A DNA stretch of 64,000 bases from Haliotis rubra (GCF_003918875.1 NW_025767401.1:1984001-2048000); one strand, 5' to 3'; shown: positions 14,040 through 63,727, counted from the first letter of the stretch. Notes: a model not told the origin generated them from the sequence alone. Numbers and translations: made by a program.

Positions 14040-14395
14040 CATGTATTAAAATTCAGATAGTAATGTTTTCTACTCATTTTAACAGGGAAAACATTTTCAT
14101 TGCCAGAGTTTCCAAGAGGAAGCTTTGGTCTATGGTAAACACTTCTTTAAATTTTAATAGGCCACATTTTTCACCATTGATGAAACCTATTGACTTGACA
14201 GACACGTTTGTTTGTGTTTTCATTAACAATCTAGTGTTTGAGATTAACTGTTCAAGCACAAATGTCCTGTTATATCCAGCTGAAATCTTTGTTTTGATGC
14301 TTGCCGATGTGTGGTGTGGCACAACTATCTTTTAAATAGGTATCATACATGATACGGAATGAAAATATATTTATCTGAAATTAACTATGATTCAC

Positions 14396-24982: not shown

Positions 24983-25262
24983 CTTTCTCAGCCCTGCTAT
25001 GACCAAGGAACACATATACAGATATATTAATATTTTCACTAAAAGCTTAGGCAAGTCAAGTTGAAACTTAACCACTTTTCTTGATTCCACTGCAGAGGAG
25101 GAATGGTTCTTTTGTAAACACAAATAACAATTGTTTCGACAAAAAGGCTTTCGTAGACTAAGGATCAGTCTATACATATATGTGTTTTTCAAAACTAATC
25201 AAGTTATTACACCATGAATATTAACATGTTTGTTCAACTAGTATTTCATAAATCATGTGTAC

Positions 25263-26135: not shown

Positions 26136-29052
26136 CTGGCAAGACACAGACATCATTTACACAGGGCATCAACACTTGATTTAAGAAACTAAGGACTTTG
26201 AGATACATGTAGTAACTTTTATCAAAGTTAAGCAGACAGACAGACAAATTTTTCCACAAATATGATGGACAACATTAGAACATTTGCAGCACAAGCCCAC
26301 CATCAGAGAGTAAATGTTGTTTCAATATTGAACGAATAATATTGTAGCTACAACATGGACAGAGAAACCCTGTCAGTCTGATCGAGTAAATTTTGGAGAT
26401 CCCACCTTTAAAACGATTACCCCAGGGAATTTGTTTACAAAGTACGTTACTATGCAGCTACAGTAGCCAGGAATGAACAATCTGTCAGTTCATTAATCTG
26501 GACAATTTGGGTGGGACATTGCTACTGTCAGGATTGAGAGGGTTCCACTGTATTTCACAGTGGTTGGGAAACAATCAAGTCTCCGCAGGGCTAATGAAAA
26601 GCAACAGTCCAAGACAAGGCTGCTATTGCTCTAAGTGAAATAGACCATCCCTTTACCATTAGGCAGATGGCAACACTGTGAAAACTAACTAGAAGACTAG
26701 ACAAAATAGAGATTAATTTTTAAGATCTATCAGCAAATGCAAACATGATTGCTTACTCAGAAATGTTAACAATATAATTTTATATTAAATTATTTTCTTT
26801 AATATTTCATACCTTTCATGATATATAATAATTGTCAAACCATACAAAAACCAAAAACATAAAAACACAACTTAACAGCTACTCTGTAACTCTTCAGCAT
26901 TCACCATATACATATTATCATGTCCTTTTCAAGCCCTAATGGCTGACAACTCTTCATCCTTACATAAAACCTGCTCCTGCTGTGACCCACATCGTGATCC
27001 CACCCATCATCTGTGCATTCATCATCCAGTAATGATGGTGGGCCATGTTTTATATACTTCATCCCCGTGGCCCACAAACCAGATAAAGCCCAGCCCTTAT
27101 CTCTCACAACAACCAAACTCCCTGTTCAAAGCACAGATCTTGTACCAGGCTATTTATACACAGTAAAGGTGCTGATTGTACTACTGGAAAAGAGATTTAT
27201 AAACATTCACTTGTTCGCCAGTTTCAGTTGGACGCCTTTTGACATTTCTCTTTATGCCAGGTCAGACTAGCCTCCCTGGTGTTGTTGGCTCTCAAAGATC
27301 ACATGTTGAATTGTGATACTGACAAGCAATTTACCAGTAAGCCAGGGAGAATACCAGTGCTATTTAAAGCAATGTACGACTGACATACTGCAATGCACAT
27401 CACATACATACTGGCGCTGTGGTCTGCATGAACAGATCGCATGTTTTTTGGCATGTAACCGTTCCATGAGAGCAGCTATCATGAATGACTAAACATGGGT
27501 CATTATCATATTAAAAGGCTTACTCATCTAATTTTACCAAATACATGTGTGACAATAATTGGGTGGAACCTAATACATGTGGGAAACGTTGGAACTTCAA
27601 ACAAATACTAGTATAAATCATAGCATTAAATAAAGGTCATTTCATCTTCTGGAACATTGAAAACAAGTTCTACTTTGTTCTGAAGAATTACCCTTTGATC
27701 ACAATGGCTAAGTAAAATGGTTTAATTACAAGCACCAAGACAGATTTAAGACAGGTTCAAATTTTGAGCTTAACGGATATATTTTTACTAAACCATACAC
27801 ATATAACTATATTTCTGGGACTAAATGTTAGTCGTAGTGTTCTCTTCTAAATGTAATAATGACAAGTACAGTTTTCATGTTGAGAAAAAGCCGAAATTGA
27901 TGCAGGTCATAGATATTTACATCACTGCAGTGAGTGAGTGAGTTTAGTTTTACACTGCACTCAGCAATATGGCAGTGGTCTGTAAATAGAAGAGTCTGGA
28001 CGAGACCATCCAGTGATCAACAGCATGAGCATTGATCTATGCAATATCTAGCCCAGCAACAATCATTATCTGCAGGAATATTTGTTTATATACTACATCA
28101 TGTATAGGACCAGGCAACATTACTGCTTGTATGGTTGATCCCTGGATTTTCTGGTCCAGACTCGATTATTTACAGACCGCCGCCATATAGCTGGAATATT
28201 GCTGAGTGTGGCATAAAACTAAACTCACTCACTGCTTGTATGCTTCTTTGTAATAAATATCATATACTGAGTATATATAATACATACACTATGCTCACCA
28301 AAACCTTGTATAATACTATGTTTATACTAGGCATATAATCTCTGGAAAACATACAGGACTAATAATATCCATATATCCAATCTAAACAAGAAGGGCATCT
28401 AGAGCAACCAGCTACCAAGTGCCAAGCTTCAACACAAATGCCACCTAGCCCCTTTCCCTCCCAGATGTCAAACACAAGGTGACTTTGATGAACATATAGC
28501 TCTTGTATCATTTGCCGGAGAAGTCAGTGATAGATTCCAACAGCTAAAACAGCTGGTGGAGTACACCTCTATTCTCTGGTCTTCTGTGTATGATCCTACA
28601 CACCAGCGAGACCAGCGTTCTGTAGTCTGCTGGCACACATATTCTTGAATTACACCAGACAGCTTCACCCTCAATGCTGGGACTACTTTTTCTCTTCACA
28701 GCCATGCTGAGAAAACATTAAAGCCTCTAAAAAACCTGCAGTATTAATACTAATATCAGGCTGCTAAATTAATTTTTTATTATAAAAATTAGGTCTTCAG
28801 GCTCAGATATGCATGTCAGCAGCTGGGGGAAAGAAACTAATTTATAAGGATTAGACTAATATGATCTTACCTCACATGTCCTTTGCTATATTGAAGTCAG
28901 CTGTTTAAAGTTTGTGTTGCCGGTGGTGGCCAACACATTTAACTTTATTGCTTTAATTAATCACATTAATCTGATGGACTGTGTGAGTGACAACATCCAG
29001 GGAAGTCAGTGTTTTGAGGCACAAGTATCAAGCATTGTTTCCAACTGTATAA

Positions 29053-45546: not shown

Positions 45547-47344
45547 AAATAAAAATAAAATAAACCCCACAAAAAACAAAAACCCCCAAAACAAACAAAC
45601 CCAAACAAACAGGAAACAAAACAAAAAAACAAACAAACAAACAAAAACCCACAAAAAAACCACAAACACAAAACGCACTTCCACATATTAAACATGTCCA
45701 TAAAGACAATATGTTAATGGTAAACTTATTAAACTCACAAAACTCTCTGGTTATACGTGTAGTTGCAACATTGTTAAAGCATATATTTATTGCTAGATAA
45801 TTACTTTGTGCTCACGTGACATTATAAATACATGATATATTAACTGTAAAATGGGCCATAAGGCCGTATATTACCGACTTAAGTGTCTGTCTGTCTGTCT
45901 GCCTGTCTGGAACTCATCCAATACTATACTGAACATGTTTTATATGATATTTTCAGGGCATACCATTATCCAGTAGGTACCAAATGGTTTTTCACTTTCT
46001 GCACCTTCGTATGTTACTTTTTGTTTCTAATTATATTGGGTAAATATATCATGTATGAATGCTGTGGTCCGATTCAAAAGGATTTCCACAAGTAGGATCT
46101 TTTTCCCCTTCGTTAATTTTTCACACGACAGAAAACCAACCTAGAGTTATTCTGCTAGATGTGTATCATATAGAAAATATTGCAAGTCGTACATATTAAC
46201 GGTGTAGAGGTATAGTGGAAGTTACAGAACTAATCTCAGTCAATCTGAATCCGCCATCCGTGTAAAGTATGATAACATGAAGTGTCAGTATAATGAGGCG
46301 AAAGGACTGGCCGTACTCGCGGGTCAGTTTGGGACTCGGGCCACTCTCCGCAGATTCCGAGGGTCCCCTAGTCGTGAGCGAACAACTGCACCACCCACAA
46401 TGAGTTTAGCCTGAGGCAGGAATCGGCTTTGTTTTATTCATTACAAATGCCCGCATGTATTGATTTCTTTACGCCGATTCTGTTAAAACTTCGGATAATA
46501 CTTAATATATAGAACATATAATGTTCATGAACATATTCAGAAGTATACAAGTACTTGCTAATTGTGAAGGAAGGAACCATGCTTGTGGCATCCATTGATT
46601 TGCTATATCAGTTATCAACAAGTTCAGTTTGCAGGCTGGGTTGGCCCAGTTGTCTGAGGCGTTGTAGTCTACAGGGCATGCCAGAACGGCCCAGAACACA
46701 TGATTGTGGATTCAAATCCCAGTTCGCCCCCATTATGTTTCAAACTTTGTCAGCAGCATACCCTTCGTGGTGGTTTCACAAAAGCGGTAATCATTTGAGA
46801 CCTGCATCACTTCGGGCTTCCTCCCTCATTTAGCAGACCCGCTGTGATATAACTGGAATGCCGTAAAACGATGCGTTGAAACCAGCTTAATAATTCCTTC
46901 AGTCAATTACAGTTGAATTGTTAGAGTTATGCGTTATATTTAAACTTCAGTGGTGACAACCCTCATGCATTAGTGTCAGTGTTTGTGATAGTGGTAATCC
47001 TGTTTAAAATAACGGTAATATGTTAACTTTCTGTCGTTTCATTATGTCATTATCCAATTCCAGCGTCAGCCCCAGATTTCTCAGGATCTTACACTAGGAA
47101 CGCCACCGTAAGGTCCCTCCGAGAAGGAATACCTTCCTTGTGTAACTCGACAGACAAATGACACAATACCTTGCATAGAATACCCGAATACCAATACAAG
47201 CTACACATGATCTACCAGCTATATGGCCGTACCAGTCTATGACTTTTGTTTGGTTGACCAATCTAACGGCTTGGTATAGAATGCCCGGCCATTAAGTGAC
47301 TGGCAGAGAGAGTCTATACTTTATTGTATGACATACCAGGACAC

Positions 47345-47456
47345 AGGGAAATCTAGTAGCTATATCTATATCAGGCTGATATCAGGACTTCACAGAGTTT
47401 GGGCTGAAAGTTCCAGTCGTATTTTTGGATAGAGTTTCCCCACAGACTACTATAAG
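47345..47456 (+). promoter_or_regulatory. Putative promoter of cytokine-like gene A: TATA-like box with kB-like motifs
   Basis: TATAAG 47451-47456, ~80 bp before the ATG. AGAGTTTCCCC 47431-47441, TGAAAGTTCC 47405-47414 and AGGGAAATCT 47345-47354 resemble NF-kB/Rel sites. Confidence 0.4.
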
Positions 47457-47534
47457 AACAGCCACAAGAAGCAGGTAAGACATACGATCTGAGACATTGA
47501 TACGTCTGAAATATTTCATACTTCTAGCTATAAC

Positions 47535-47541
47535 ATGAAAG
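47535..47541 (+). CDS. Secreted helical cytokine-like gene A, coding exon 1 (M-K + 1 nt)
   Basis: AACATGAAAG|GTAAAG. The phase-1 donor joins exon 2 in frame to give the signal peptide MKGLLFLAVVYINLHQGLC. Paralog B has the same 7-nt exon. Confidence 0.7.
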
Positions 47542-47836
47542 GTAAAGCGTTACAGGAAATGTTTGATCGTTTGTCATGTCATACAGTAGTCAATCATGTT
47601 TGTTTTCACAGTTTGACTTATCTGATAACCTAAAGGTTATGCAACTTCTTATGTATTTTTTTAACGTATTATTTATATAAGTTTATTTGAAGTACAAACA
47701 AATTGGTGTTAGATGAATCTTGTATATTTTGTGTGCTATAAATTGGGAACAATTATCATGTAGACATGCCTACTGTGGATTCTTGTCCCCAGTGCGTATA
47801 CAAAACATGTCTATAGTGTTCCTATTAATGTGTTAG

Positions 47837-48053
47837 ACCTGTGAAGATCCGGTTTAGAATTGGGCTTGACTAACGAGATCGGGCGGTCAGGCTCGCTGAC
47901 TTTGTTGACACATGTCACCGTATCCCAACTGCGTAGAACGATGCTCATGCTGTAGATCACTCGATTATCTGCAGACCGCCACCATACAGCTGGAATATTG
48001 CTGAGTGCGGCGTTAAACAACAAACAATAACTAATCAATCAATCAATCAATCA
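47837..48053 (+). mobile_element. SINE-like repeat, family H, in intron 1 of gene A
   Basis: Body match, (AATC)n tail, TSD ATTAATGTGTTA. Confidence 0.88.
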
Positions 48054-48082
48054 ATTAATGTGTTAAGTCTTCCCTGTACCAG

Positions 48083-48306
48083 GGCTATTGTTCCTTGCTG
48101 TGGTGTACATCAACCTACACCAGGGACTCTGCAGGACCCTGTCCATCACGTCTGACCACTGTCAACCATGTGGTGCTCCATCTACGGATGGGAGAAGAAC
48201 TCACCTTCACAACCGTTCCCCTGGTGACATCTGCACCATCGCCAATGAATTCACCATCAAAATTGGCATCCTTAGGCGGACTGTCAGAAACCAACTGGAT
48301 ACACTT
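48083..48306 (+). CDS. Secreted helical cytokine-like gene A, coding exon 2 (signal peptide, SDxCQPC, predicted helix A)
   Basis: CCAG acceptor, GTGAGT donor, phase 1/0: LLFLAVVYINLHQGLCRTLSITSDHCQPC...CTIANEFTIKIGILRRTVRNQLDTL. Homologous to 56781-57016. Confidence 0.85.
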
Positions 48307-48637
48307 GTGAGTTTAATCGGATTATTTTCCTTGAATTTCGTTGATTCGTTGATCAGTCCTAAGTAACGTTTATATGCTGACACATTAAGTGTCATTTGAT
48401 AACACATGTATGCACTATGACTGATTAAATTAAGCATACAACGTCTTGTTTATTGCACAGAGCGACATTTCGATGTAGATTCTTAAACCGCTATCAATTG
48501 TCATTTTTGACCAACCAAGTTCTAGAATGCCGATTAAACAGTATAATTGATTCATGAAGAAAATGCTGGACATACGAAATAAATGTTGGGAAAAGAAAAA
48601 TATGGTGTTTGAAATGTTGAAATTGTTTCCTCGGCAG

Positions 48638-48736
48638 GTCAATGGTTTGTTTGATGGAGATGCCGATTACTTGGAGTGGCGTTACCAACAGAGACGACAT
48701 TTCCTACAGTGTGCTCCATCAAGTGATACATCAAGG
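48638..48736 (+). CDS. Secreted helical cytokine-like gene A, coding exon 3 (predicted AB loop)
   Basis: GCAG acceptor, GTAAGG donor, 99 nt, phase 0/0: VNGLFDGDADYLEWRYQQRRHFLQCAPSSDTSR. The [FY]D[GN]D motif is shared with B and C. Confidence 0.8.
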
Positions 48737-48849
48737 GTAAGGGTTCTATGTGGTCATGGTTACATATAACAAACAAGTACACACAATTGTCTTCGTAGTT
48801 GCTTGATAACCTTGGTAAGAATAATTGTACATCTGATAGTTGCACCTTA

Positions 48850-49415
48850 CTATTTAGGTATGGTTTGGTTTTATTTGGTTAACGCAGACAGTTGGCAATG
48901 TAAATATGTTTATTAGACAGCTGCGTATGCTGGCTATTGATATGTTTAAGCAGGAATGGCATTCAACTATGATTGGAAGTTCTATTTAAGTCGTTAACGT
49001 TGCTTGAGCCAGAATCTTATTTAGCAAACTTACGCTACAGAAATGTTTGCAATGTCTCTATACGTTTTAGATAAGGCCTTGATGATTTAGTGATTAACCG
49101 TGGGCGATATTTTTCTATTGAAAAGACCCAAAGACTATGTCCATTATGTAACAATATTGAATATGAATTCCATTTTATGTTTATTTGTCCTGTATATGAA
49201 AATCCAAGAAATAATTGTCTAACGCAATTGCCTTTATCTCATATCAATGTCTTACCTGAAAAGAACCTTCAAAACAACACAAAGTAGCCCTATTTATTTA
49301 CAATGCATTTTTGTTGAGAACAGAATTGGTTAGTTGATCATATATGCCATTGCTAATGTATATATCTTTTGTATATGGACCTATGACATTTCATGTAATA
49401 AAGAATTGATTGATT
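48850..49415 (+). mobile_element. Decayed LINE 3' fragment in intron 3 of gene A
   Basis: INRGRYFSIEKTQRLCPLCNNIEYEFHFMFICPVY is a LINE C-terminal CCHC-type knuckle; ends AATAAAGAATTGATTGATTG. Confidence 0.75.
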
Positions 49416-49452
49416 GCTACAAGTAGATCAGTGAATTTGTTTCTCGTTTCAG

Positions 49453-49779
49453 ATGTCAGCAATGGCGTCACTCTATGATCGACTTGTTGGCCTTCATATC
49501 TATGTCAACTTCACTGAAGGGTACCGCCGGTCTTGTTCTGTGACTGTTGAGGGGATCGCTCACCAAGTGTCCCTGGCGGTTTGTGACCTGCATCACATGA
49601 TGAGAGTGACGTCCCAGACGCAGGGTCATGAAGACGTGTGTCGCAAACAATGCGGTCTGGCCATCGGTGGGTGTGTGTCGTTCCAGAGACACGCCTTCAA
49701 TGCCTTGCGGTATGCATCGGATGTACTGGAATCCATATTCCAGGAGGCTGGACTTTTGAAACAGGATTGGGGGTGCTAG
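49453..49779 (+). CDS. Secreted helical cytokine-like gene A, last coding exon (predicted helices B-D)
   Basis: TTTCAG acceptor, phase 0: MASLYDRLVGLHIYVNFTE...C...AVCDLHHMM...DVCRK...GCVSFQRHAFNALRYASDVLESIF. Aligns by eye to the last exons of B and C. Confidence 0.85.
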   Translation: MSAMASLYDRLVGLHIYVNFTEGYRRSCSVTVEGIAHQVSLAVCDLHHMMRVTSQTQGHEDVCRKQCGLAIGGCVSFQRHAFNALRYASDVLESIFQEAGLLKQDWGC

Positions 49780-50405
49780 AAGCAAGGTTGGAGTGGTTGA
49801 AGCAGGATCGGGGGTTCTTGAAGCAGGATTAGGGTGCTAAAAGCAGGATTGGGGGTTTTAGAAGTAGGATTGGGGTGCTAGAAGCAATACTGTGGGCGCA
49901 AGAAGCAGGATTGGGGGGTGGTGGTGCTAGAAGCGGCATTGGGGGAGCTGGAAGCAATATTGTGGGCGCAAGAAGCAGGATTCGGGGCGCTAAAAGCACG
50001 ATTGGGGTGCTAGAAGCAGGGTCGGGGTGCTAGAAGCAATACTTTGGGCGCAAGAAGCAGGGTCGGGGTGCTAGAAGCAAGAGTGGGGATGCTAGTAGCA
50101 GGATTTGGGGGTTAGAAGCAATATTGGGAGTGCTTGAAGCAGGATTGGGGTGCTATTAGCAATATTGGGGATGCTAGAAGCAGTATTTGGGTGTTAGAAG
50201 CAATATTGGGGGTGCTTGAAGCAGGATTGGGGGGTGCTATTAGCAATATTTGGGTGCTAAAAGCAATACGGGGGTGTTCGAAGCAGGATTGGGGGTGCTA
50301 TTAGCAATATTGGGGTGCTAGAAGCAATACTGGGGTGCCCGAAGCAGGATTTGGGTGTTAGAGGCAATATCGGGGGTTCTAGAACTAGGATTGGAGTGCT
50401 AGAAA
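49758..50405 (+). repeat. 20-21 bp minisatellite (~30 units), consensus GAAGCAGGATTGGGGTGCTA
   Basis: Direct tandem repetition; the first unit overlaps the last codons and stop of gene A. Confidence 0.95.
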
Positions 50406-51206
50406 CATATTTTCTGTAACATTATTGGTGCTTATTTCGTTATTCACTGAAACAGGTCAATGGTTAGTAGGAGTCAATGCAACATTTTATGAGTGTGCAA
50501 TACCTTGGTTTAATAATTCTCATATTATCTCATATTATCACTGACTACATATTTTAAGATTTGATTTGACATTTGTAATTTGTCATCCCATTAGTTGTGG
50601 GTTATTTAATACATTCCGGCAATAAACCTTAAACATCCCATTGTTGCCAGCCACATACCACAAGAATTCAAGAACAACAGAAAAGGCTATACACTGTTCT
50701 GATTGTCCTACTTTCATGTGGATAAAGTATTTTGTACATTAGATAATTTATTGTTGATGTATTAACTAAGTTATTTAGAAGAAAATGTTCATATACGTGT
50801 ATTATGAATTTATTTACATGTTTACTTAGCTATGAAGGTCATAGTATGCTACAGATATTCATACATATTTCAGCTCAAACATTGTTTACATTAATATCGT
50901 ACTTTAAATGCAATGCCTCTTGATGTGTTTAAGTTTGTTGCCATTTAAGAGGGCCGTTTTAAAATATCCGTTCCGTTGCTGATTGTTGATTTGTACATAT
51001 GATTGTATGTATTTATTGATATTTTTGTACATTGTTTTTGCTTAAAGGATGTTACAGTTTTGCTGAAAGTACGTTTAAAATGTGAATAATTTTGCTATTA
51101 AATGTGACAAAAATATCCGTTGTCTTGATGTTTATAATTCATTTTATAGAACGAGTGTTGTATAATCCAGCGTTCCGTTTAAAAGGAACAACTGGAACTG
51201 GCTATT

Positions 51207-51420
51207 CTTCAGTAACCCATGCTTGTCATAAGAGGCCACTAACGGGATCGGGTGGTCAGGCTCGCTGACCTGGTCGACACATGCCATCGCATCCCAAATG
51301 TGTAGATCCATGCTCATGCTGTTGATCACTGGATTGTCTGGTCCAGACTTGATTATTTACAGACCGCCGCCATACAGCTGGACTATTGCTGAGTATGGCG
51401 TAAAACCAAACTCGCTCACT
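51207..51420 (+). mobile_element. SINE-like repeat, family H
   Basis: Body match. Its 3' flank is shared with the copy at 58297-58551. Confidence 0.88.
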
Positions 51421-53193
51421 AATTGAAAAAAGTATTCGTTTGATAAACTCTTATCGAAACGATAGCGTAGATGGACGCTCATGCTGTTGATCTCTGGATT
51501 GTCTGGTCTAGACTTGATTATTTACTGATCGCCGTCATATAACAAACTAAAACTCGTCTCGAAATGTGAACACATACCATATGTCTTCAAACACATGCAA
51601 AAGGCAAAAAGTTCAAGAATTTTTAGGAGGGAATAGGATAACATTTCATCCTCATATTGTTATCTGCATGTGAAGAAAAAGAAATAAAACTTTAGAGAAA
51701 CGGTCATGATGAAATTGTAACTATCAACATTCAAACCATGTACGTACAGCGGGAGTATTATCACGTTTGTGATATTACATACCTGTGTGTAACATTGCAT
51801 GAATGGCAACTGCGTCATGTGGAGTAACGAAGCAGCATTTCCCGGAAATCGTCCTTTCCCTGCTAAGGTGCCATTGTGCTTGGATCAACAAAAGCAGTGT
51901 TACACAATTCACAACAGTGAATGCAGCGACTATAACGGCTGTGTTACTCACTTCGACTGTGGTTCTAGCAAGACAAGTTCTTTGTCAGTGAATGAATATG
52001 ACGAACCTCTACACACCGAATGTCAAGGTTATGACGCTTGTATCTATATTTGGTCTACAACGTAGTAAATATCTAGACCATGGCCTAGTTTGTATAGTGG
52101 TGTATGTGACATCTCAGCATGCTCATTTTGAAATGCTGAGAAGATGCCATCAATGTTAGTATATGAATATTGTGGATACAACGGAAGGTAAAGCCCCGAG
52201 AACTGTATTAGTATAATGTAAAGTGTGTGTTCAATTTGCAATGAAATGCTCTGAAACATTGCTCTTAACGATCTGTAAAACATTATGATTCAACATTCAC
52301 CCATTAGGCGCACAGGATTCGAACCCGGGTGTTCGGCGTGACGAACCAACGCTTTAACCACTAGGCTACCCCACCGCCCCCTGAGTTATATTGATAACAA
52401 GACATATATTCATATAACTGAAATCACACAATAGCTATCATACACTATTGCACAGATATCTAGATTGGGTCGGCAGTGATTCATTGGGTCGCTAAGAGTG
52501 GGGGACATGCAACTGAATGCTCGTGAACTACGATCACACATCTAATATTATATTCTCTCTCTACATATATGACATTTTAAACGTGCAATATGTTTGGAGG
52601 CCTTTAATAATAGTGATCACTGTATGTTTATCGATTTACACGTGGCGCTGTACTTCCTTTAAATATTATGTTTTATGTAATACATTTGACACATACGTTG
52701 TGTTACTTTCGAATGTATGGACTTACGAATGCTTCTAATGGCGCTTTTAACGTTCAACACCATTATACCATAATTGCGTGAGTACATCTTTACATAATTA
52801 TTTTCATAATGTATTTCTGTCAGGCTGTGATGATTTGAAGTATGTGAAGGGGTGAGGAAGTCCAACGTCATACCGTTTGAACACTGGGACAAACCGATTC
52901 TTTATACAACCAGACAGCACTAGGACGTGTATGTAGACATGTAATGGCGTATTTGGATGTTTTACTGTGCAGTGTACATGTTGACTTCCATTAAAACCTT
53001 TTTAACGATGGTTTAATTATGTGTGAGAGTTTAAATAGTTATTGTGCAATTATGCTGTGAGGTTCAACAAAATATATCGTTTGAACACTCACAATGCGTG
53101 TGTTGTGTATTTGTCATGTGATGATTTGAAGCTAGTGAAGGGTTAAGGTGGGCCACAAAATGTACCGCTTGAACAAACCGTGTCAAATAAATA

Positions 53194-53378
53194 NNNNNNN
53201 NNNNNNNNNNNNNNNNNNNNNNNNNNNNNNNNNNNNNNNNNNNNNNNNNNNNNNNNNNNNNNNNNNNNNNNNNNNNNNNNNNNNNNNNNNNNNNNNNNNN
53301 NNNNNNNNNNNNNNNNNNNNNNNNNNNNNNNNNNNNNNNNNNNNNNNNNNNNNNNNNNNNNNNNNNNNNNNNNNNNNN
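53194..53378. other. Assembly gap (N run)
   Basis: Run of N. Confidence 1.
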
Positions 53379-54444
53379 CATTGCAGGATATAATGTAAAG
53401 TTCGTTGGAAATTCACTATGATATTGCCATTCACCATCATTTTGATAATTAGTTGTAACATGTTTATATTAATTTTGCGAAAACAAACATATGCTAATGA
53501 ATAAATTGTGGTGTCAAATTAAGGTGATTTTGAATCCTTAATGAGACCAATTGTTCACAGAAAGGATACCGTAATTTTCCGGCATGTCACAAACACACGG
53601 AAAGGCGACTCAAATGTTCACCTGAACAACCAGTGATTTTAGAATTAGTGCGTATGTTCATAGAAATAAAAGCTGTTATGTTTGAGCTGTTGTCCTCCGG
53701 CACAATTCAGCGTATCTATACTAAATGCCACTGTTATTTTTAAATTCAGGTGATAAATAATGTATTGCATTTTCTCTGAAATTATTGATATCGCGTTGAA
53801 ATGCAACCTGTCCGTGTTCATTTTAAACGCATCAGTTTATAAATTGCTGTAAATCTAGGAGATTGCATATGAAACTTAGGTGCTCTTCTAATTTTACCTT
53901 TATGTCCGAACTGTCAGTTTTCGGAATAATAAAATTGACAAATCTCAAGAGCCATGAAGTGAATGTAAAGCACGGGCATGCTTCATACTTCAAGTTTTCA
54001 CATTTCAGCACTGTTTTTGTCTGCGATATTTGGCATCATCGTTACATCCCAACGACAACGACAGGTTGTTTCATACTTAAGAAAAACTACATAAACACGA
54101 GCGTTGTTTTGGCAGTCAATAATTTTAATTCATAAAAAAACGAGAAAAATACATTCGACATTTCACTTTTCAACGATAATGAAAAGATTGATTATACATT
54201 TGAAAGAATATGAAAGATTAATAGTTTCACTGCTGCACGCATACAGTGTAATACAGCCCATTTGGACACTGAGGAATGTAACGTTCGTTGAAGACTGTTG
54301 ATAACCAACAAGGGAATACAACATGAGAAATACATATGATTGACATGAAACTTGGTACATGACATGGCACAGTGGAGAGATTATTGGGCAACGTAGTGTA
54401 CGCATTAGACACATATATGTGTTTCCGTGTTTTTTTGTTTAACG

Positions 54445-54683
54445 GACCCGTGAAGGTCCGGGTTAGAATTGATCTTCAGTAACCCATGCTTGTCGTAAGG
54501 GGCGACAAACGGTAAAGGGTGGTCAAGCTCGCTGAAGTGGTTGACAAATGTCATCGTATCCCAGTTGCGCAGTGCTCATGCTGCTGATCACTGGATTGTC
54601 TGGTCCACACTAGATTATTTACAGAACGCCGCCATATAGCTGGAATATTGCTGAGTGCGACGTAAAACTAAACTCACTCACTC
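54445..54683 (+). mobile_element. SINE-like repeat, family H
   Basis: Full body, (ACTC) tail, TSD TTGTTTAACG. Confidence 0.9.
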
Positions 54684-54804
54684 TTGTTTAACGTGGCACT
54701 CAGCAATATTACAACTGTTTGCCTGCATATAAATACCTTAAGTGACAATTAGAAGTTGGTAAACAAAGAACTTTTATGGACTGACATCTTCTCTATTGCA
54801 ATAG

Positions 54805-54867
54805 GTGGGTGAGGTGAAGTTGGGTTTTACGTCGTGCTTGAGAATATTTCGCTCATATGACAACGTG
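54805..54867 (-). mobile_element. 5'-truncated family M SINE (3' 63 bp only)
   Basis: Matches the SINE 3' end (13610-13675); 13-bp TSD TCTATTGCAATAG (54792-54804, 54868-54880). Confidence 0.85.
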
Positions 54868-55034
54868 TCTATTGCAATAGATACGACGTTTCGGTGTAGA
54901 TGCTAACACCGTTATAGACATAATTGTAAAAGGTAAATCAACTAAGGCAAGAAATAAATAGTATCATTGTAAATATGACTTTCCTGAGATTCAGTTGTCG
55001 TCGCATGAAGTGAGATCATGCCCTTGTGCTTCTG

Positions 55035-55322
55035 TTATGAACAGTTACGTCTCCTCAACTCTCCTAGGATCTCGTGAAATGTGTGCGCTGCCGTTATAAG
55101 AACACGTCTGGCAAAGATCTGGAAGGATGGACATCCAGGAGGGATATGTCCCTCTTTTATACATATGTCTCTGAAGTGTGCAGTGTGTGGCATCATGCCA
55201 AATACGTGGCACAGCGGAATATGGTCGGCGATGTTGTTGATGTTCACATCGCATCCACCTCTCATCTCAATGAGTTTCAGGTTCAGATGAAGGAATGAAA
55301 GCTTGTTGTAAATAATTTCCAT
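55035..55322 (-). CDS. Secreted helical cytokine-like gene B, last coding exon (predicted helices B-D)
   Basis: ACAG acceptor, phase 0: MEIIYNKLSFLHLNLKLIE...C...IPLCHVFGMM...DIC...GCPSFQIFARRVLITAAHTFHEILGEL. Clearly paralogous to 63217-63531. Confidence 0.88.
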   Translation of the reverse strand: MEIIYNKLSFLHLNLKLIEMRGGCDVNINNIADHIPLCHVFGMMPHTAHFRDICIKEGHIPPGCPSFQIFARRVLITAAHTFHEILGELRRRNCS

Positions 55323-55753
55323 CTGTGGCGAGAAAGTGATGAAATGTTTTTAGAGAATGTAAATTATTTAACCTTTAAAACCAGTATTACATTAGCTGTA
55401 TTATCAACGTTCTGTAAAACGCTAGATTCAATACCCTATAGGAACGACGGAAAATATCTTTCTAAATGAAAACGACACTGTGGTTATTTATGAATATTGT
55501 ATAGTTATGCATTATTTTCCCCTATTCAACAACATCTATTCCAATTTTAACGTAAACGTGTTGTAAATTCTGTAAAAACTCAGATTCAATACCCTACAGT
55601 AGAGTCAGAAACGGTTTCATTCTGTAGCATGAAAATCATACTATTATTATTTATGAATAAAGTATAGATTACGTATTATTTCTTTTTCATATGCTGCAAC
55701 ATAAATCCAACGTTAACGTAAATTATTTTATGTTTGATGCATATATGGCTTAC

Positions 55754-55825
55754 CCATGAAAGATTTGTTGGAGTTTCAATATGGAGACGGTCAGTGCCGA
55801 AGTCATCGTTGTCAAACACCATTTG
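55754..55825 (-). CDS. Secreted helical cytokine-like gene B, coding exon 3 (predicted AB loop; not in ORF track)
   Basis: TTTTCCTAG acceptor, GTAAGC donor, 72 nt, phase 0/0: QMVFDNDDFGTDRLHIETPTNLSW. Paralogous to gene C exon 63653-63727. Confidence 0.85.
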
Positions 55826-55972
55826 CTAGGAAAAGATTAAAACAAAAAGATTCATAAACATACGGCGATGTGAACTGGTATAATATTTCCGTTTAACATT
55901 ACTCCGCCTATAGCGACATGCATGTAGGTGCCCGTGTCCGTCTGTGACTGCTTGTACTGGTCATTATCTAAT

Positions 55973-56085
55973 CTGGGCCTAGATTTTCGAAGTTCTCTTA
56001 GCGCTAAGATAGTCGTAAGTTAATGTTAATGTATGGCACTTACAACTATCCTAGCGCTAAGAGGGCTTCCAAAATCTAGGCCCCG
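55973..56085. mobile_element. Palindromic MITE, PIF/Harbinger-like, in intron 2 of gene B
   Basis: GGGCCTAGATTTTCGAAG...CTTCCAAAATCTAGGCCC; almost wholly palindromic. Confidence 0.8.
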
Positions 56086-56562
56086 GTTTATAGAGCTAAC
56101 CCACTGTGATACCAGGTCCCAGTTTATACTGATTCCTTGTCAACCAGTTCTTGTTAATGTACTTCCGGTTGACTACTAGGGTGACAGCAGGTATCATCCT
56201 TTAACGTGAGTTGGTATAACGCGATCGGCTCTCGAACTACCTAGATACTCTATCTACTAGATGCGGTTGGAGGAATGTGGAGGCACTAAAGTACTAGTTT
56301 TCTAATTCAGACAAAGGAAAATAAATATTTGTTTTGAAAAAACGCATTGATGATCTGAATTACATTGTTTCATTGAAAACGTGGTTAATCTGTAATGATG
56401 AAATTTCCTTATGATACCAACCTTTGATTCTCTAATTGAATGTGGGTTCACGAAATACCGACAGACCTGCTATTATTTTTCGTGCCAGTAGACCTAATGA
56501 TTAACATATACACTAAGTATTGGCCTTATTGCAAGATGCATGTCCTATGCACTTGTCTCTTT

Positions 56563-56690
56563 GCATATAAAATATTAATAAATATAAATAAAATATAAAT
56601 ATAATATAAATACAATATAGATATAATATAAATACAATATAGATATAATATAAATACAATATAAATATAATATAAATATAATATGATATA
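56563..56690. repeat. AT-rich simple repeat
   Basis: (ATATAATATAAATACAATATAG)-like repeats. Confidence 0.9.
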
Positions 56691-56780
56691 AAGAAAAGTA
56701 CAATCAATGCACTTTATCGTACTTGCTCCAGCACCACCTACTGATGGCAAGTCGTCCATGGACGTGTCAGCTAAACATAC

Positions 56781-57016
56781 CAGGTGCTGCCTTGATCGAT
56801 TCACGATTCTGTGAAGCCGTCGTATCTGGGCGATGAGTTCATGGCGGTCGTGGCAGTCGAGCGTTAGGTCTTCCTCAGACAGGTTGACGAGTTGACTGAC
56901 CGGCTGTAGGACACGGCCCGAACCTGTGCATGGTTGACATGTGTCAGACAGGTAACGGTTGACCACACACAAGCCATCTTGACTGACCAGGCACAGACAC
57001 AGGGCCATAGCGAACA
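56781..57016 (-). CDS. Secreted helical cytokine-like gene B, coding exon 2 (signal peptide, SDxCQPC, predicted helix A)
   Basis: TTCCAG acceptor, GTATGT donor, phase 1/0: FAMALCLCLVSQDGLCVVNRYLSDTCQPC...CHDRHELIAQIRRLHRIVNRSRQHL. Confidence 0.88.
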
Positions 57017-57253
57017 CTGGAAGATAGTGTATAGAGAAAGGTGTTTATAATCTGTATAAATAGCCTTACAAAGTAACTTAGCGCTGTCGTAAGTCTATGT
57101 TGAGGTCAAGAATTACGATCATCAGAGCAAAAAGATCACTTTGTACAACTCGCTGTTGTGGAATAATACATCATGTAAGAAGACTTGTACACATATGTGT
57201 TAGAAGAAAATCCGTTACGTACATAAACAAATAAATGAAATAAAATGGCCTAC

Positions 57254-57260
57254 ATTTCAT
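57254..57260 (-). CDS. Secreted helical cytokine-like gene B, coding exon 1 (M-K + 1 nt)
   Basis: GTCATGAAAT|GTAGGC on the minus strand, phase 1, giving MKLFAMALCLCLVSQDGLC. Mirrors gene A exon 1. Confidence 0.7.
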
Positions 57261-57331
57261 GACTGTAAAGTGAAATGATCTCTGGTACAGTGATTCAAAA
57301 TTAGTTATGCACTTACCAAAACAACTCTTGC

Positions 57332-57404
57332 TTTATAAGCACTTTGGACCTGAAACCTGGAAATTACTGAAACTTGAAGTCTCATAGCAAAAGTTTTGCA
57401 CAAT
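57332..57404 (-). promoter_or_regulatory. Putative promoter of gene B: TATAAA with kB-like and C/EBP-like motifs
   Basis: TATAAA on the minus strand at 57332-57337, ~75 bp before the ATG; GGAAATTACT 57359-57368; TTGCACAAT 57396-57404. Confidence 0.4.
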
Positions 57405-58296
57405 TTACATTATTACTAATAAGATGCGATCCTACTGGTCAGTTGATTCAAGATCTGGTTTATCCATCAACAACTATCAATTTCTTGAACCAGACAGAGT
57501 GCATTTAAATATAATATTTATTATACCCACAGTTGCATATAACCGGTGACCCATTAATGACATGGTTCAATGTTTCACAAGTAGGGTCCCATTAACAGTA
57601 TGGAAATTTATATATTCAAAGTTCACAATTCACAATAAAATTGGCAAATCACTGTAATCTCCATCGGTTGCAGCATGCACTGGCTGTGTGGGAACGATCG
57701 TCAATTCCTGATTCAGTGTTATCGTTGGTTTTAGATTTTATTACAAAGAAGAGGATTAGAAACCAATAGTTCTATTTTTATTATAATCTTTGGTATTGAA
57801 ATGAATATTTGAATGTTATCAACAAACCTGATAAAGCCTTATAATATGTTATTTCGTTTGCTACAAAGTCAGTAATCGCATGAAAACGATTTCTGTGGTC
57901 CCAGCTAACATATTGGTGCTTTCGTTTATTTTTCGTACAATTACTGAGTAAGGTCAGGGCAGATTTGTGGTTGCAATGACCGCTTTATCAAACCCCCACA
58001 TTGGTACAGTGTGTGAAGCCCATTTCTAGAGTCCCGAGCGGTGGTATTGTTGGAATAATGCTTAAAAATTTAACAGTCCACAACCACACAAACTTACATG
58101 CGCGCACACAAACAGAACATATATAACGATATTGTCATATTACTGGTTGTAAACTGTACGGAAGTGTGTGTTGCCTTGTTGGAAAGCTCATTAAATGGGG
58201 TTAGGTAAAGGAATTATTTCTGATATTTTTATCATTTACGGAATATTAAGATTTAGCAATAACTACAATTCGGATGCCACGTTAATTAAAAAAAAC

Positions 58297-58551
58297 ACCG
58301 TGAAGATCCGGGTTAGAATTGATCTTCAGTAACCCACGCTTGTCGTAAGAGGCGACTACTGGGATCGGGTGGTCATGCTCGCTGACTTGGTTGACACACG
58401 TCATCGTATCCCAATTGCGTAGATCCATGCTCAAGCTGTTGATCACTGGATTGTCGGGTCAAGACTTGATTATTTACAGACCGCCGCCTAATAGCTGGAC
58501 TATTACTGAGTACGGCGTAAACAAATGATAAAACTAAACTCACTCACTCAC
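58297..58551 (+). mobile_element. SINE-like repeat, family H
   Basis: Full body and (ACTC)n tail. Confidence 0.9.
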
Positions 58552-58639
58552 TAATTGAAAAAATATCCGTTTGATAAACTCTTAGCGAAGATTTCGATTA
58601 AACGTACGACACATTCCTCTTAGATAATAAACATGGTAC

Positions 58640-59515
58640 TTCAGAGTGACGTCATGTTTAATAAATTGTCTGAGAAGTTTGAAATACAGGCTGAACAGAA
58701 TATCACTTGAAACTATGTATAAATCATTTATGTTGCCTATCTTGGACTACTGTGATACCATCTGGGATTATTGTACCAAGGAGCAGGCTCATCTGATAGA
58801 GAAGCTACATCTAGATGCCCTTAGGACTATTTCAGGTGCAGTGAGAGGCACAAGTCACGATCAACTCTATGCTGAGACAGGATGTAGTTCCTTAGTGGAA
58901 AGGCGCCACTATCATAAATTATGTATGTTCTACAAAATGGTAAATAGGTTAACCCCACAATATCTCTCAATATGGGTACCACCAAATGTTTCTAATCAAA
59001 GCCACTATAATTTGCGAAACTCCGATAATCTCCAATGTAATGCAGGGCGTGTATCTTACTTAATAATTCTTTTCTCCTATCTACTGTTAAGGCATGGAAT
59101 TCGCTTGACATCAATATTAGAAATGTAGAGTCATTATCAAAATTTAAGAAATGTATATCCTGTGACATGACATTCTCCCCAACATTTAAAAATTATATAT
59201 CGTATGGTCCCAGGCGAGGTCAAATTCTTCCCTTTCGTTTGCGCCTGGGCTGCAGTGATCTCAACTCTCACTTGTTTGATAGATGTTTGTCAGACAGCCG
59301 AACCTGCTCCTGTGGAAACACTCGAGAGGATCCTCTCCATTATTTCCTTCAGTGTCCTCTATATGACAGGTTTAGATGTAATAAATACTTCCTTCAAACT
59401 AATATAAATTTACATGCTATTCTAAGCGGCGATGAATCTTTGTCTCAGTATGAAAACGAATTGATAATAAAATCGGTTTATAATTTCTTAAGTGACACCA
59501 ACCGGCACGAATGCG
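58640..59515 (+). mobile_element. 5'-truncated, frameshifted CR1/L2-type LINE (post-RT region and C-terminus)
   Basis: MYKSFMLPILDYCDTIW...ERRHYHKLCMFYKMVNRLTPQYL...YNLR and RLRLGCSDLNSHL...CSCG...EDPLHYFLQCPLY. Confidence 0.9.
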
Positions 59516-60005
59516 ACCAATTACATCAAACATATATTTCTCTTAAATCAGGCCATTTATTTGACATATATTTGGAGGCCCTAATGTGTATACTTGTAAA
59601 TATTTATTCGTTGTTACAAAATTATACATGTACTCTTTGAAGAAATGATTCCTTCAGTGACTTCTCTGGTAAAAGCCTAATTATATACAAGGAAAGTGGA
59701 AAGTTGTTATGTATAATCTAGAAGAAATAATTCTGTAACGGTTTGAGATCAAGTGACACATGCCTGAGTGCCGAAATTCTTAGCAATTTCTCTAAAGCAT
59801 TATCCAGAGACCTTTTTCATTTTAGCCGTATGAACTTGAAAACAGAAAAGGTATTGGTGGTAGGTGTTGAAAGAATGGCCAAATAGAACTCGAACTTATG
59901 AAACTATGGCACACAATCACCACTGTCATCCTCTTATATGAAGGATATGAAGAGCACATGCTATGAAACCCTTGTTAATATCTCAGTGTCGTTGTAATTG
60001 ATGTA

Positions 60006-60855
60006 CACTAAACGCCAAAAGAAACCCTTCTACCTTAATGAATTACTTAAAAAACTATCAAAGATATGTTAGAAGGCATTAGTTAACAAGAAAGCTTAAC
60101 AACACACTTTTATGCAAAAACATTCTCAAATGCATTCATATTTCGGTGAAATGCATGTTTTTGCAGAAGAGTTAAATTGTCCTATTTCCGCCCATGCCAA
60201 AATAAACTAATAACAGTGATTTAGATGTCCAAAAGAAAGGTTGAAATAAAATTCTGCTTTGGAACAAAGATAAACCATTTAAAGTCACCATTTTTAACTA
60301 TTAAAACAAGAAACAACCGTTGTAGAGTGTGTAAAATTGTAAAATAATAATTCCTATGATTTTAGTCTTTTAAAACTTTTTCTGATGATTTGCATTAGTG
60401 AAAACAAGTAAAACGTGTCTTTGATATTGTGAAAAAAATGTTTATTAACATCTACAATGATCTACAATGATCTTGCAAAGTAGCATTTTTCCATTTTCTG
60501 TTTACACATAGCAATATCAATCGCCAAAACGCAGCAATATTCAAGCAGTATTTGCATCCATTTCACATGTAGAATGATTCTATAGGGTATGAAGAGGGCC
60601 TAGAAAAGATGATATGATGGAAAATTGCAAGTAGTACGAGAAATATTACAGCTGAAGAGAGAGAAAGAGCCATTGGGATGGTGCAGATGGGGTCGACATA
60701 CAATGCTGCTGGCAACGCCCTCGGATGCCACCGTATCAAGGTTATAAGACTTATTCAGGACTTCAGACATACTGGGGTCACCCTAGACAGACCAGTTACA
60801 GATAGGTACCTCCTTCATTAAGGAAAGAGGGTAACCTTTCTTTTGGCGTTTAGTG
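60006..60855 (+). mobile_element. Internally deleted Tc1/mariner DNA transposon
   Basis: TIR CACTAAACGCCAAAAGAAA / TTTCTTTTGGCGTTTAGTG with TA TSD. 60637-60793 encodes the Tc1 HTH remnant RNITAEERERAIGMVQMGSTYNAAGNALGCHRIKVIRLIQDFRHTGVTLDRP. Confidence 0.9.
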
Positions 60856-61084
60856 TACATGTAGATATTGTTGTCATCCATCTTGGCAAGTAGGTGAATT
60901 GTAGAATTAAAAGCGACTAAACCATTTCCATATTCACAAGAAATGCAATTCCATTGTACGATTCCAATCATATGACTACATGGCTTTTGAATCACCTTTA
61001 AACAGTGTTTGTTTGTTCCATGTCTTCCAGCAGTGGTGTGTAAACATTCGAAGCAGTCCAGTGGAATACGATGACATGTGTTAA

Positions 61085-61272
61085 CAGTCCAGTGGAACCA
61101 CACGACGATGACATGTGTTAACATCAACCAACCCCTCAGTCAGAGATGACATATGTTAACCAAGTGACCACCCGATCCCGTTAGTCGCGATGACATTTAC
61201 AAGTCAAGACACCACACGACCCCGTTAGGCATGGGTTGCTGAAACCCAATTATAACCCGGATGTTCACGGGC
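61085..61272 (-). mobile_element. Rearranged family H repeat
   Basis: Repeated GATGACATGTGTTAAC and CACCCGATCCCGTTAGTCGC...GATGTTCACGGG segments. Confidence 0.65.
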
Positions 61273-62169
61273 CCCCACCAAACAGGGATACTACCAGATG
61301 TCCCCTGAAACAGTGAGCGTATCCTGCCCCACCAATGGGACAGTCGCACGCGATTTCTTACAAATCGATAGTTCACCACCGCCCCAGGGGACTATACGAT
61401 AGTCAACTAAAGGATGGTATCGGTCATCATTATGATCATTGTTATTGTTATCCTCCACATGTCTTCAATTATTCTTTTGAAAGCTTTACTGAGGCCAAGA
61501 ATGTGATAAACTTCAACACAAACGTCTGAGCAAGAGCCGCATGACGTTATTTGACGTCTGTGTAGAAAGTGCATGTTCGATTTTACTTCAAAAGGTGTGA
61601 AATGTAATCTTCAAAGGATGGACCTACTGAAATCCTGCTCGGTAAAAAGACAAGGTTGACGATTGGAAAGCAGAAGTCCCACTTGTCATACAGACTTATG
61701 GATATTTCACTTTCCTAACAGATCGATCTATGAAACAGACGAGACGATCTCACTTGTGTCCTTTATTTCTACCTCAGATGGATTACTCAGTAGAAGAGAA
61801 CGGGCTACTTGGTGGCTATTGAACGATGTAACTTGATTGATATACCCGAAGCTGACGTTAAACTGATTGGCCAAATCACCTTGTTTTGTCTTTGTCAATC
61901 CGAGCGAAAATTCCGATTCGTATGCTTAAAGAACCAGACCTGCAAGAAATGGAGCATTATGGGTGTCCATCGGGATGCCTACTTCTGGACTAAATGTTGT
62001 CAGTCTAAATTTGACACTGACGTCAACTCTGAGCATTTCACGTAGTTTTCAGTGTCACGTGACATCGAACCATAAACATCATGAATGAATAACATAACTT
62101 TGTCATCAGTTTTTGCAAGGAACATTCTTTTAATTCATAACGAGCAAGTAAAATGCACATTGTTTAAAT

Positions 62170-62512
62170 GAGGTGAGGTGAACTGGGGTTTAACGTCGTA
62201 CTTAAGATTATTTCACAGATATGATGACGTGCATACATGTGTATGTGTGGCTGCTTGTACTAGCCCAGACCTAAGCTGGTTTTATAGTGCAAGCTCACTG
62301 AGATACCATGCTGGAGCTAAGCATGAATACCCCACTCACACATTATACTGACTCCGAGCTGATTAAGCCATGTTATACCCATTAATGCCGAGCGCCAGGC
62401 AGGGACCAACAAGTACCATATTTTGACGTCTTTTGGTATGACGCGACCGGGATCGAACCCGCGACCTTCCGCTCTCCGGGCGGACGCTCTGACCACTACA
62501 GCACGGAGGCGG
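62170..62512 (-). mobile_element. tRNA-derived SINE, family M
   Basis: Reverse-complement match to 13318-13675, including A/B boxes and (CACCT)n tail. Confidence 0.92.
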
Positions 62513-63216
62513 TTTGTTTTAATAAGAACTGTTTGATCATCAATATAAATAATAATCTGTCAACACCATTGAATTAATTAATAATAGAATCATGGCAACA
62601 CAAAAAAACATCATCACGGAATCCTCAAGAAAGTGTTCATGCTAAACATAAATTGCACCTCAATGGAAATTGGCATTTAAAATATGCTTATATGTTGGCT
62701 TGATACATCATGATTATCCCTGACAACATACACTCCATATTCTCACACGCAATATTGTATGGTTGACAGTGACAAACAACACTCACACACTCACTCACAA
62801 TCATTAACAAACAAGCTCAACCATTATCAATGGTATACAGTTAATGATACGGCCAATAAATAGATATACAAAACAACAGCGCATGCATTGACCCAAAATA
62901 TTAATATTGGGTAATACACTTCAAATGTACAAATACACTAGTAAATTGATTTGCCATGTAGGCATAGCAATGGGTCATGGCACCATCGAATAGAGCTGTA
63001 GCTTGTCAGAATAGATCTTCAGTTCACTACCTTGTGAAATCTATGCACACTAGCTGCAACACTACAATCACGGATAAGTCAGATCTGTCAGACAATTCCA
63101 ACTGAATTTACTTTCTTTTCTGTAATAAAGACAACATTCTGTAAATGAGGAATTCTTGAAGCTTGAGGTGAATATCTGACATAGTGGAACTTAGCACAGA
63201 AACGGTATTTCCTTAT

Positions 63217-63531
63217 TCAATAACAATGACGTATTGTGTATCTCGTCAATTCACCTAGGATCTCGTTAAATGTATGCACTGCAGTTGTAAGGACGCGGTA
63301 TGCAAATAACTGAAAGGATGGACAAATTCCTGAAACGTGTCCATCTTTTCTGCATATGTCATTGAAACGTTCCGTCTGAGACGACCGGGCCATCATGTAG
63401 TGCATGTGACACAGGGGAATACACTGGGCTGTGTTGGCCGTATTCACTGAACATGCATATTTCCTTGGATGAGTCTCGATGAGTTTCAGGTGAAGGTGAA
63501 GGAAAGACAGTTGGTTGTAAATTCTTTCCAT
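63217..63531 (-). CDS. Secreted helical cytokine-like gene C, last coding exon (predicted helices B-D)
   Basis: TTTCAG acceptor, phase 0: MERIYNQLSFLHLHLKLIE...ICPSFQLFAYRVLTTAVHTFNEILGEL. Paralog of gene B. Confidence 0.88.
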   Translation of the reverse strand: MERIYNQLSFLHLHLKLIETHPRKYACSVNTANTAQCIPLCHMHYMMARSSQTERFNDICRKDGHVSGICPSFQLFAYRVLTTAVHTFNEILGELTRYTIRHCY

Positions 63532-63652
63532 CTGAAATAAGAAAATGATAATTAGAAACGGACAATATAGGACCATGTCTATTACAGGCTACACCGTTTA
63601 GTTAATCAGTTGCGTGTCTGCAGGAGCACACCTGTTAATGGATTTGACTTAC

Positions 63653-63727
63653 CCATGAAAGTCCTACAGGAGTGTCGATGTTTAGTAGGTCTACAGCAAT
63701 GCCATCCCCATCATATACATTAATGAT
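63653..63727 (-). CDS. Secreted helical cytokine-like gene C, penultimate coding exon (predicted AB loop); 5' exons beyond right edge
   Basis: TTCTCAG acceptor, GTAAGT donor, 75 nt, phase 0/0: IINVYDGDGIAVDLLNIDTPVGLSW. Confidence 0.85.

Follow-up and report, generated by a model that had tools for sequence, protein, structure and literature searches.

Three tandem genes at an abalone locus

This report concerns a cluster of three tandem paralogous genes in the abalone Haliotis rubra, which we call A (plus strand), B (minus strand) and C (minus strand). They are located in a 64,000-nucleotide stretch of genomic DNA (GCF_003918875.1, NW_025767401.1:1984001-2048000), referred to here at its full length as the window. 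An earlier note on this DNA had proposed, from the sequence alone, that the cluster encodes secreted proteins with the architecture of long-chain four-helix cytokines. Our computational analysis of the gene models, their conservation and the predicted fold of their products shows that the three genes are conserved and coding, and points to an IL-6-like fold that would make their products candidate ligands of a class I cytokine receptor. Each gene has four exons, and splicing in silico generates open reading frames of 218 residues for A, 200 for B and 202 for C. The exons that the earlier note had placed in the window, together with the lengths it had given for A and B, were recovered by our reading of the DNA and by splicing, and gene C is indeed represented in the window by its last two exons, the first two lying just past the window end. 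The features of the cluster, with positions counted from the first nucleotide of the window, are the following.

47235-47534, plus strand: gene A promoter and 5′ region, with a CCAAT box, a TATAAG box at 47451-47456 and two kappaB-like motifs, GGGAAATCT and GAGTTTCCCC
47535-47541, plus strand: coding part of gene A exon 1, ATGAAAG (Met-Lys and one base of the Gly codon, its first), with a phase 1 intron after it
48083-48306, plus strand: gene A exon 2, encoding predicted helix A, preceded by the remaining signal peptide and the N-terminal segment SDHCQPC
48638-48736, plus strand: gene A exon 3, encoding the AB connection, which includes FDGD and is predicted to contain a short helix
49453-49779, plus strand: gene A exon 4, encoding predicted helices B, C and D, CVSFQ opening helix D, the C-terminal Cys and the stop
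53194-53378, no strand: intergenic N gap in the assembly, flanked by A (stop at 49779) and B (stop at 55035), whose 3′ ends point towards each other
55035-55322, minus strand: gene B exon 4, encoding predicted helices B to D, CPSFQ and the stop
55754-55825, minus strand: gene B exon 3, encoding the AB connection with FDND
56781-57016, minus strand: gene B exon 2, encoding the remaining signal peptide, SDTCQPC and predicted helix A
57254-57260, minus strand: coding part of gene B exon 1, ATGAAAT, with a phase 1 intron after it
63217-63531, minus strand: gene C exon 4, encoding predicted helices B to D, CPSFQ and the stop
63653-63727, minus strand: gene C exon 3, encoding YDGD
64645-64856 (window-equivalent, past the window end), minus strand: gene C exon 2
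65119-65125 (window-equivalent, past the window end), minus strand: gene C exon 1, ATGAAAG

The three gene models are built alike. All introns in A, B and C are GT-AG, with phases 1-0-0 in each gene, and the first coding exon consists in every case of ATGAAAN only, an arrangement that is hard to explain by chance. A TATAAG/TATAAA box is present 80-95 nucleotides upstream of the ATG in A, B and C. Over the 300 bp upstream of gene A, an alignment of three abalone species gives a mean column identity of 84%, the CCAAT, TATA and kappaB-like blocks being invariant. A palindrome, TCAGGCTGATATCAGG, lies between the CCAAT and TATA boxes of this promoter and is conserved in the three species. The assembly gap is untouched by any exon or reading frame of A, B or C and, because A and B converge on it from either side with their 3′ ends, no gene frame depends on it.

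Repeats also touch the genes themselves. One is a minisatellite (49758-50404, plus strand) of ~650 bp, with a period of about 20/41 and ~31 units, which starts with the last 22 nucleotides of the gene A coding sequence, its first unit encoding KQDWGC and the stop. Beyond the gene A stop there is a degenerate minisatellite array in H. asinina, and H. rufescens has the first unit only. Another is an AT-rich repeat at 56568-56619, inside intron 2 of gene B.

That A, B and C are paralogues, as the earlier note had held, is supported by BLASTP between A and B (E 8e-10 for the last exon and 1e-4 for exon 2), by the 54% identity between B and C, and by a search of the whole genome with a last-exon profile, which returned exactly three copies corresponding to A, B and C. 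Orthologues are found in at least four Haliotis species. An exhaustive HMMER search of 1.84 billion representatives revealed one true relative, the "uncharacterized protein" XP_048249759.1 from H. rufescens, whose cluster includes the H. cracherodii protein XP_071089192.1 and a second isoform, and a gene A orthologue 87% identical to A was also found in H. asinina. The exon joins in the RefSeq gene A proteins from H. rufescens, H. cracherodii and H. asinina equal those of the gene A model in the earlier note, and when the RefSeq proteins of H. rufescens and H. asinina are placed on their genomic loci, they display four exons and a start as in gene A. Gene order is conserved as well. In H. asinina, A is followed downstream by an intact B orthologue and then by the last exon of an orthologue of C, with the order and orientation A(+), B(-), C(-) kept; in H. 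rufescens, gene A is present and a single last exon of B/C type lies on the border of the locus examined. The upstream neighbour of the cluster, FAM184, is common to H. rubra, H. asinina and H. rufescens, and in the window a large FAM184 exon lies at 25221-26156 on the minus strand (Pfam E 5e-55). The H. rufescens locus also contains, ~5 kb downstream of gene A, an extra A-type exon 2 (16495-16671, plus strand) broken by in-frame stops and a frameshift, a pseudo-exon relic that suggests birth-and-death turnover of the cluster.

Outside Haliotis, no relative of the family was detected by any sequence method that we used. A homologous-protein search with gene B exon 2 gave no match, and the same search with the full family alignment matched only two clusters of gene A orthologues. 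The one further match of the family profile, a 1534-residue database protein (E 5.6e-6, 16 stretches), was rejected as a relative because it is the translation of a ~45-residue tandem repeat, and thus a low-complexity artefact.

For gene A, the ratio of nonsynonymous to synonymous substitution rates (dN/dS) is 0.19-0.32; gene B has a value of 0.40, and the part of C that was available has 0.27. dN lies significantly below dS (Fisher p 2e-5, 2.6e-14 and 3.3e-5), and two abalone species share 68% identity in gene B. All three genes are coding and conserved, evolve fast and are under purifying selection. These results bear directly on a first alternative, namely that the open frames are decaying duplicates or chance open reading frames rather than functional genes, which we consider very improbable. 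It could draw on the broken exon 2 copy in H. rufescens and on the absence of B and C from the RefSeq gene calls for H. asinina and H. rufescens, which also counts against the cytokine interpretation discussed below. However, the four-exon frames are intact and their splice sites conserved both here and in H. asinina, selection acts against amino acid change, the cysteines and the gene A promoter are conserved, and RefSeq has gene A models for three species, one of which shows two isoforms.

Features of the encoded proteins

The products of A, B and C all start with MK followed by a hydrophobic stretch of 10-14 residues with small residues at -3/-1, and were judged by this rule to carry a signal peptide. 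The signal region ends in GLC in A and B, and in VLG in C. The spliced proteins agree with the earlier note on the GLC signal end and the SDxCQPC segment in A and B; this segment, near the mature N terminus, is in fact common to A, B and C. The CxSFQ motif attributed to all three is likewise present and invariant; it lies where helix D is predicted to start, and could correspond to the site-III aromatic (FxxK or Trp) of gp130/LIFR ligands. The other motif, [FY]D[GN]D, is found in A, B and C but is lost in the H. asinina B orthologue, where the corresponding residues are SDNT.

Each mature protein contains eight conserved cysteines (C10, C13, C34, C119, C135, C154, C165 and C199 in mature H. 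asinina A numbering). Five of these, including the C-terminal one, are in the last exon, which corrects the count of four aligned cysteines given previously for that exon. The A-type proteins have two extra cysteines (C83 and C158), and the Californian A orthologues another two. The extra cysteines thus mostly arise in pairs, as expected of disulfides, the gene C protein being an exception with nine cysteines in its mature part. N-glycosylation sequons are kept between species, NRS and NFT in A and NLS in B. On the basis of these sequence features, the mature proteins of ~180 residues are probably secreted and N-glycosylated, and the eight conserved cysteines would be expected to form four disulfides.

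Predicted fold and structural matches

We folded the mature H. asinina orthologue of gene A with AlphaFold 2 (AF2), using an alignment of 16 rows including exon-encoded pieces of A, B and C. The resulting model is all-helical (mature residues 30-62, 67-81, 94-117, 126-143 and 168-196), with low confidence overall: the mean predicted local distance difference test score (pLDDT) is 52, with helices at about 58-68, and the predicted template modelling score (pTM) is 0.48. In this model, helices A and B are connected by 31 residues containing a short helix, B and C by a loop of 8 residues, and C and D by a loop of 24 residues, which reproduces the long-short-long pattern of connections that the earlier note had read from the sequence.

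Comparison of this model with known structures gives a consistent picture. The 50 best Foldseek rows against the PDB are almost exclusively long-chain class I cytokines, with a target-normalised template modelling score (TM-score) of up to 0.69, the top rows including IL-27p28, G-CSF, IL-11, prolactin, growth hormone (GH), CNTF, EPO, LIF, IL-6 and IL-12p35. The expectation that the fold would match this class was borne out, on a low-confidence model and with Foldseek E-values of just 0.04-0.8 and nothing below E 0.001. VIA-align, an exhaustive structural search of 48,161 PDB chains that does not depend on Foldseek, places helical cytokines at all of ranks 1-18, with 149-166 residues aligned sequentially. 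The list comprises IL-11 (Z 14.0; 149 residues, 3.5 Å), IL-27p28 (Z 13.4), CLCF1 (Z 13.0), CNTF (Z 12.6), placental lactogen (Z 11.8), IL-6 (Z 11.7), OSM (Z 11.4), GH (Z 11.3), viral IL-6 (Z 11.2), IL-12p35 (Z 10.6), LIF (Z 10.5), leptin (Z 9.7), IL-23p19 (Z 9.3) and type I interferons (Z 9.3-8.3), the first non-cytokine being a designed protein (Z 8.1), and it has to be read with the caveat that helical models may score Z ~13-14 by common arrangement alone. That the list is purely composed of cytokines, with 149-166 residues aligned in sequential order, indicates that the AF2 model has the rare up-up-down-down connectivity.

A search of a different kind, based on ESM Atlas features and performed with the H. 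rufescens protein, leads to the same superfamily. The best cluster (0.94, with 212 of 256 features shared) is uncharacterised and mostly molluscan, with Pfam IL6 on 11% of its members, and the next clusters are LIF, G-CSF-like, GH/PRL (Hormone_1), IL-12a, IL-6-like and IL-11. All ten of the best named matches are in one clan, and the unnamed neighbours are clusters of uncharacterised arthropod secreted proteins. With the last exon of gene B alone, the feature search gave no usable match.

The hydrophobic periodicity of the family, averaged by column over six members, is that of an amphipathic helix for helix A (100 degrees, p=0.01) and helix D (100 degrees, p=0.0005), weak for helix C (105 degrees, p=0.12) and beta-like for the segment of helix B (155 degrees). 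Of the four amphipathic segments described earlier, two show a helical period, one shows it weakly and one has a period unlike that of a helix. Chou-Fasman propensities were uninformative for this family, and a split-chain co-fold of the gene B exon 2 and exon 4 pieces (ESMFold2, without alignments) gave a score of 0.02 that is evidence neither way.

These observations have to be weighed against a second alternative, in which the cytokine topology is an artefact of low-confidence modelling and the proteins are secreted, disulfide-rich and partly helical molecules of another or a new fold. We consider this unlikely, if far from negligible. Several points argue for it and, by the same token, weigh against a cytokine fold. 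In addition to the low scores of the model, the high Foldseek E-values, the Z-scores attainable by arrangement alone and the beta-like period of helix B, the alignment behind the model is shallow, equivalent to some seven related proteins. When gene B's last exon is folded alone, helices are obtained only at residues 2-21 and 65-93 (pLDDT 60-77), the middle (residues 21-64) has a pLDDT below 50 and helix C is not recovered; there is a proline within the presumed helix C segment of B and C. The ESM Atlas shape search found nothing above TM 0.38. No profile links the family to any cytokine family: Pfam gave no match at E <= 10 for the exons and the full-length orthologues, Pfam IL6 (PF00489) and LIF_OSM (PF01291) searched against the whole genome left the exons of A, B and C unmatched, and a family profile searched against all PDB sequences returned no cytokine. 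Moreover, AF2 and ESM Atlas are both neural networks trained on known proteins and are not fully independent. On the other side, two different methods, VIA-align and the ESM Atlas features, point to one superfamily; the structural list is unusually clean over a long sequential alignment; and the loop lengths, size, secretion and strongly amphipathic helices A and D suit the fold. The earlier note had also named a strong profile match to an unrelated family as evidence that would count against its proposal, and Pfam yielded none, Egg_lysin included. Taken together, this modelling makes a long-chain class I helical cytokine fold likely for the family. By sequence, the proteins belong to none of the known cytokine families, and the most fitting description is that of a family restricted to Haliotis for which an IL-6-like fold is predicted.

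Candidate ligands compared with known cytokines

The closest likeness of the abalone family is to the IL-6/gp130 family (IL-11, IL-27p28, CLCF1, CNTF, IL-6, OSM and LIF). Like these, the abalone proteins appear to be secreted, with ~180-200 residues, a predicted up-up-down-down bundle and long-short-long loops, and this family provides both the best structural matches (Z 14.0-10.5) and the nearest language-model clusters. No sequence or profile similarity between the two is detectable, and the eight-cysteine pattern with its N-terminal CQPC is, to our knowledge, unlike that of any IL-6/gp130 family member. Their genes may also show a likeness, with a single intron placed within the signal-peptide region and the remaining ones inside the mature domain. 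The IL-6 gene has one signal-peptide intron and three domain introns (PMC13081863). The abalone genes have one signal-peptide intron and two domain introns, that is three in total versus four in IL-6, with helices B to D encoded on one exon. Phase 1 introns in signal peptides are common among secreted proteins generally, and this likeness of intron layout is suggestive only.

Other long-chain class I cytokines and hormones (G-CSF, growth hormone, prolactin, placental lactogen, leptin, EPO and TPO) share the fold class predicted for the abalone family, and G-CSF has a Foldseek target-normalised TM-score of 0.66-0.69 against the abalone model. As a group they rank slightly below the gp130 family in the exhaustive search, and have no sequence similarity to the abalone proteins; as far as we know, these families are restricted to vertebrates. 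In invertebrates, the only established ligands of class I cytokine receptors are the Domeless ligands Unpaired (Upd1-3) of Drosophila, which are sequence orphans beyond their own lineage (PMC13203501). We found no sequence relation between Unpaired and the abalone family. Upd proteins are about twice as long as the abalone proteins. In oyster, CgIFNLP has been described as a secreted protein with a claimed helical cytokine-like 3D structure and a receptor coupled to JAK/STAT-related genes, and as class II and interferon-like (PMC9756803). The abalone model differs in that class I long-chain cytokines come first and interferons reach only Z 9.3-8.3, and the HMMER search of 1.84 billion representatives revealed no oyster protein related to the abalone family.

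The overall reading that we favour, to which we assign a probability of about 0.5, is that A, B and C encode class I-type cytokine ligands of a gp130/Domeless-like receptor that activate JAK/STAT. The proposed mechanism is as follows. The secreted proteins would fold as a long-chain up-up-down-down four-helix bundle, nearest in shape to the IL-6/gp130 family (IL-11, IL-27p28, CLCF1, CNTF and IL-6), and would carry signals outside the cell as ligands. Their target would be the cytokine-binding module of a class I receptor of the gp130/Domeless-like kind, and binding to it would in turn lead to JAK/STAT activation. If the fold is correct, a role as ligands is the natural interpretation, because the secreted proteins among the 18 best structural matches are all ligands of class I or class II cytokine receptors; receptor binding, JAK/STAT signalling and any immune role we infer only. 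The biological context is compatible with such a system, as IL6R-like receptors (with Ig, IL6R and FN3 domains), JAK and STAT have been reported in Mollusca (PMC13203501), and we found STAT exons in this genome. The sole IL6Ra-bind exon match in the genome is weak (26.3 bits, E 0.01), with no recognisable FN3/WSXWS exons within 30 kb of it, and both of these findings weigh against the proposed ligand role, together with the missing RefSeq calls for B and C. There was no match to Lep_receptor_Ig in this genome, and none to the Jak1_Phl domain, the latter being uninformative since genes match exon by exon.

A third alternative accepts the cytokine-like bundle but not the JAK/STAT role, and sees in A, B and C a lineage-specific secreted helical family—for instance reproductive or gamete-interaction proteins, pheromones, neurotrophic or hormone-like factors that use a different class of receptor, or antimicrobial or binding proteins. 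The detection of the family only in Haliotis and its fast evolution are in line with this, in particular for gene B with its dN/dS of 0.40, and fast evolution fits reproductive proteins too. The isolated and weak IL6Ra-bind exon leaves no receptor established in this genome. Abalone offers a classic case of rapid evolution in sperm lysin and sp18, secreted proteins of the helical-bundle type that are specific to abalone, evolve fast and have paralogous genes. However, lysin and sp18, which are both in the PDB, are not among the 50 best structural matches, and the abalone family described here matches no Egg_lysin profile and differs by its eight conserved cysteines and by purifying selection, its dN/dS being clearly below 1, unlike the positive selection typical of lysin. 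Considering also that the best structural matches are so uniformly cytokine-receptor ligands, we judge a role of this other kind improbable, although it retains real weight, and prefer the reading of A, B and C as JAK/STAT-activating ligands.

The window and another contig, C2086, contain further elements outside the coding frames of these genes. An intronless open frame of a rhodopsin-type or Srw-like G protein-coupled receptor is found at 3655-4575 on the plus strand (E 1e-8), and a retroelement remnant with a zf-RVT domain at 14359-14865 on the plus strand (E 9e-11). An interspersed repeat occurs four times, always on the minus strand (47811-48038, 51144-51329, 54405-54554 and 58282-58446), with similar translations including SEPDHPIPLVASYDKHGLLK. 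One copy is in intron 1 of gene A and the others are intergenic, similar copies exist on contig C2086, and the repeat is probably a SINE-like element (short interspersed nuclear element). Between B and C, at 58646-59640 on the plus strand, two adjacent open frames without a Pfam match have the look of a retroelement remnant and resemble the C terminus of a non-LTR (long terminal repeat) reverse transcriptase. Contig C2086 also carries, at 680680-681354 on the minus strand, a 225-residue open frame with a signal-like segment and three x[FY]PRIGR repeats, which looks like a PRXamide neuropeptide precursor of the small cardioactive peptide or pyrokinin type.

What the cluster may mean for cytokine evolution depends on the vertebrate link. 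A 2026 survey found no invertebrate IL-6-like ligand beyond insect Unpaired and a shrimp lectin, and suggested that other ligands exist (PMC13203501), and the discovery of lamprey IL-6 required structure guidance (PMC13081863). It is possible, if somewhat doubtful, that A, B and C encode the first class I helical cytokines to be identified in lophotrochozoans, that is, extremely diverged relatives of the IL-6/gp130 ligands and the endogenous ligands of the molluscan IL6R/Domeless-like receptor. If this is true, the ligand-receptor-JAK-STAT module would date to the bilaterian ancestor rather than having been assembled in vertebrates, and if the vertebrate link is real, the origin of helical cytokines would move back to that ancestor. 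If it is not, the cluster would still define an uncharacterised, conserved, secreted family of abalone proteins. In either case, it provides concrete candidate ligands with complete gene models in a farmed gastropod, which makes the question of what activates molluscan JAK/STAT testable.

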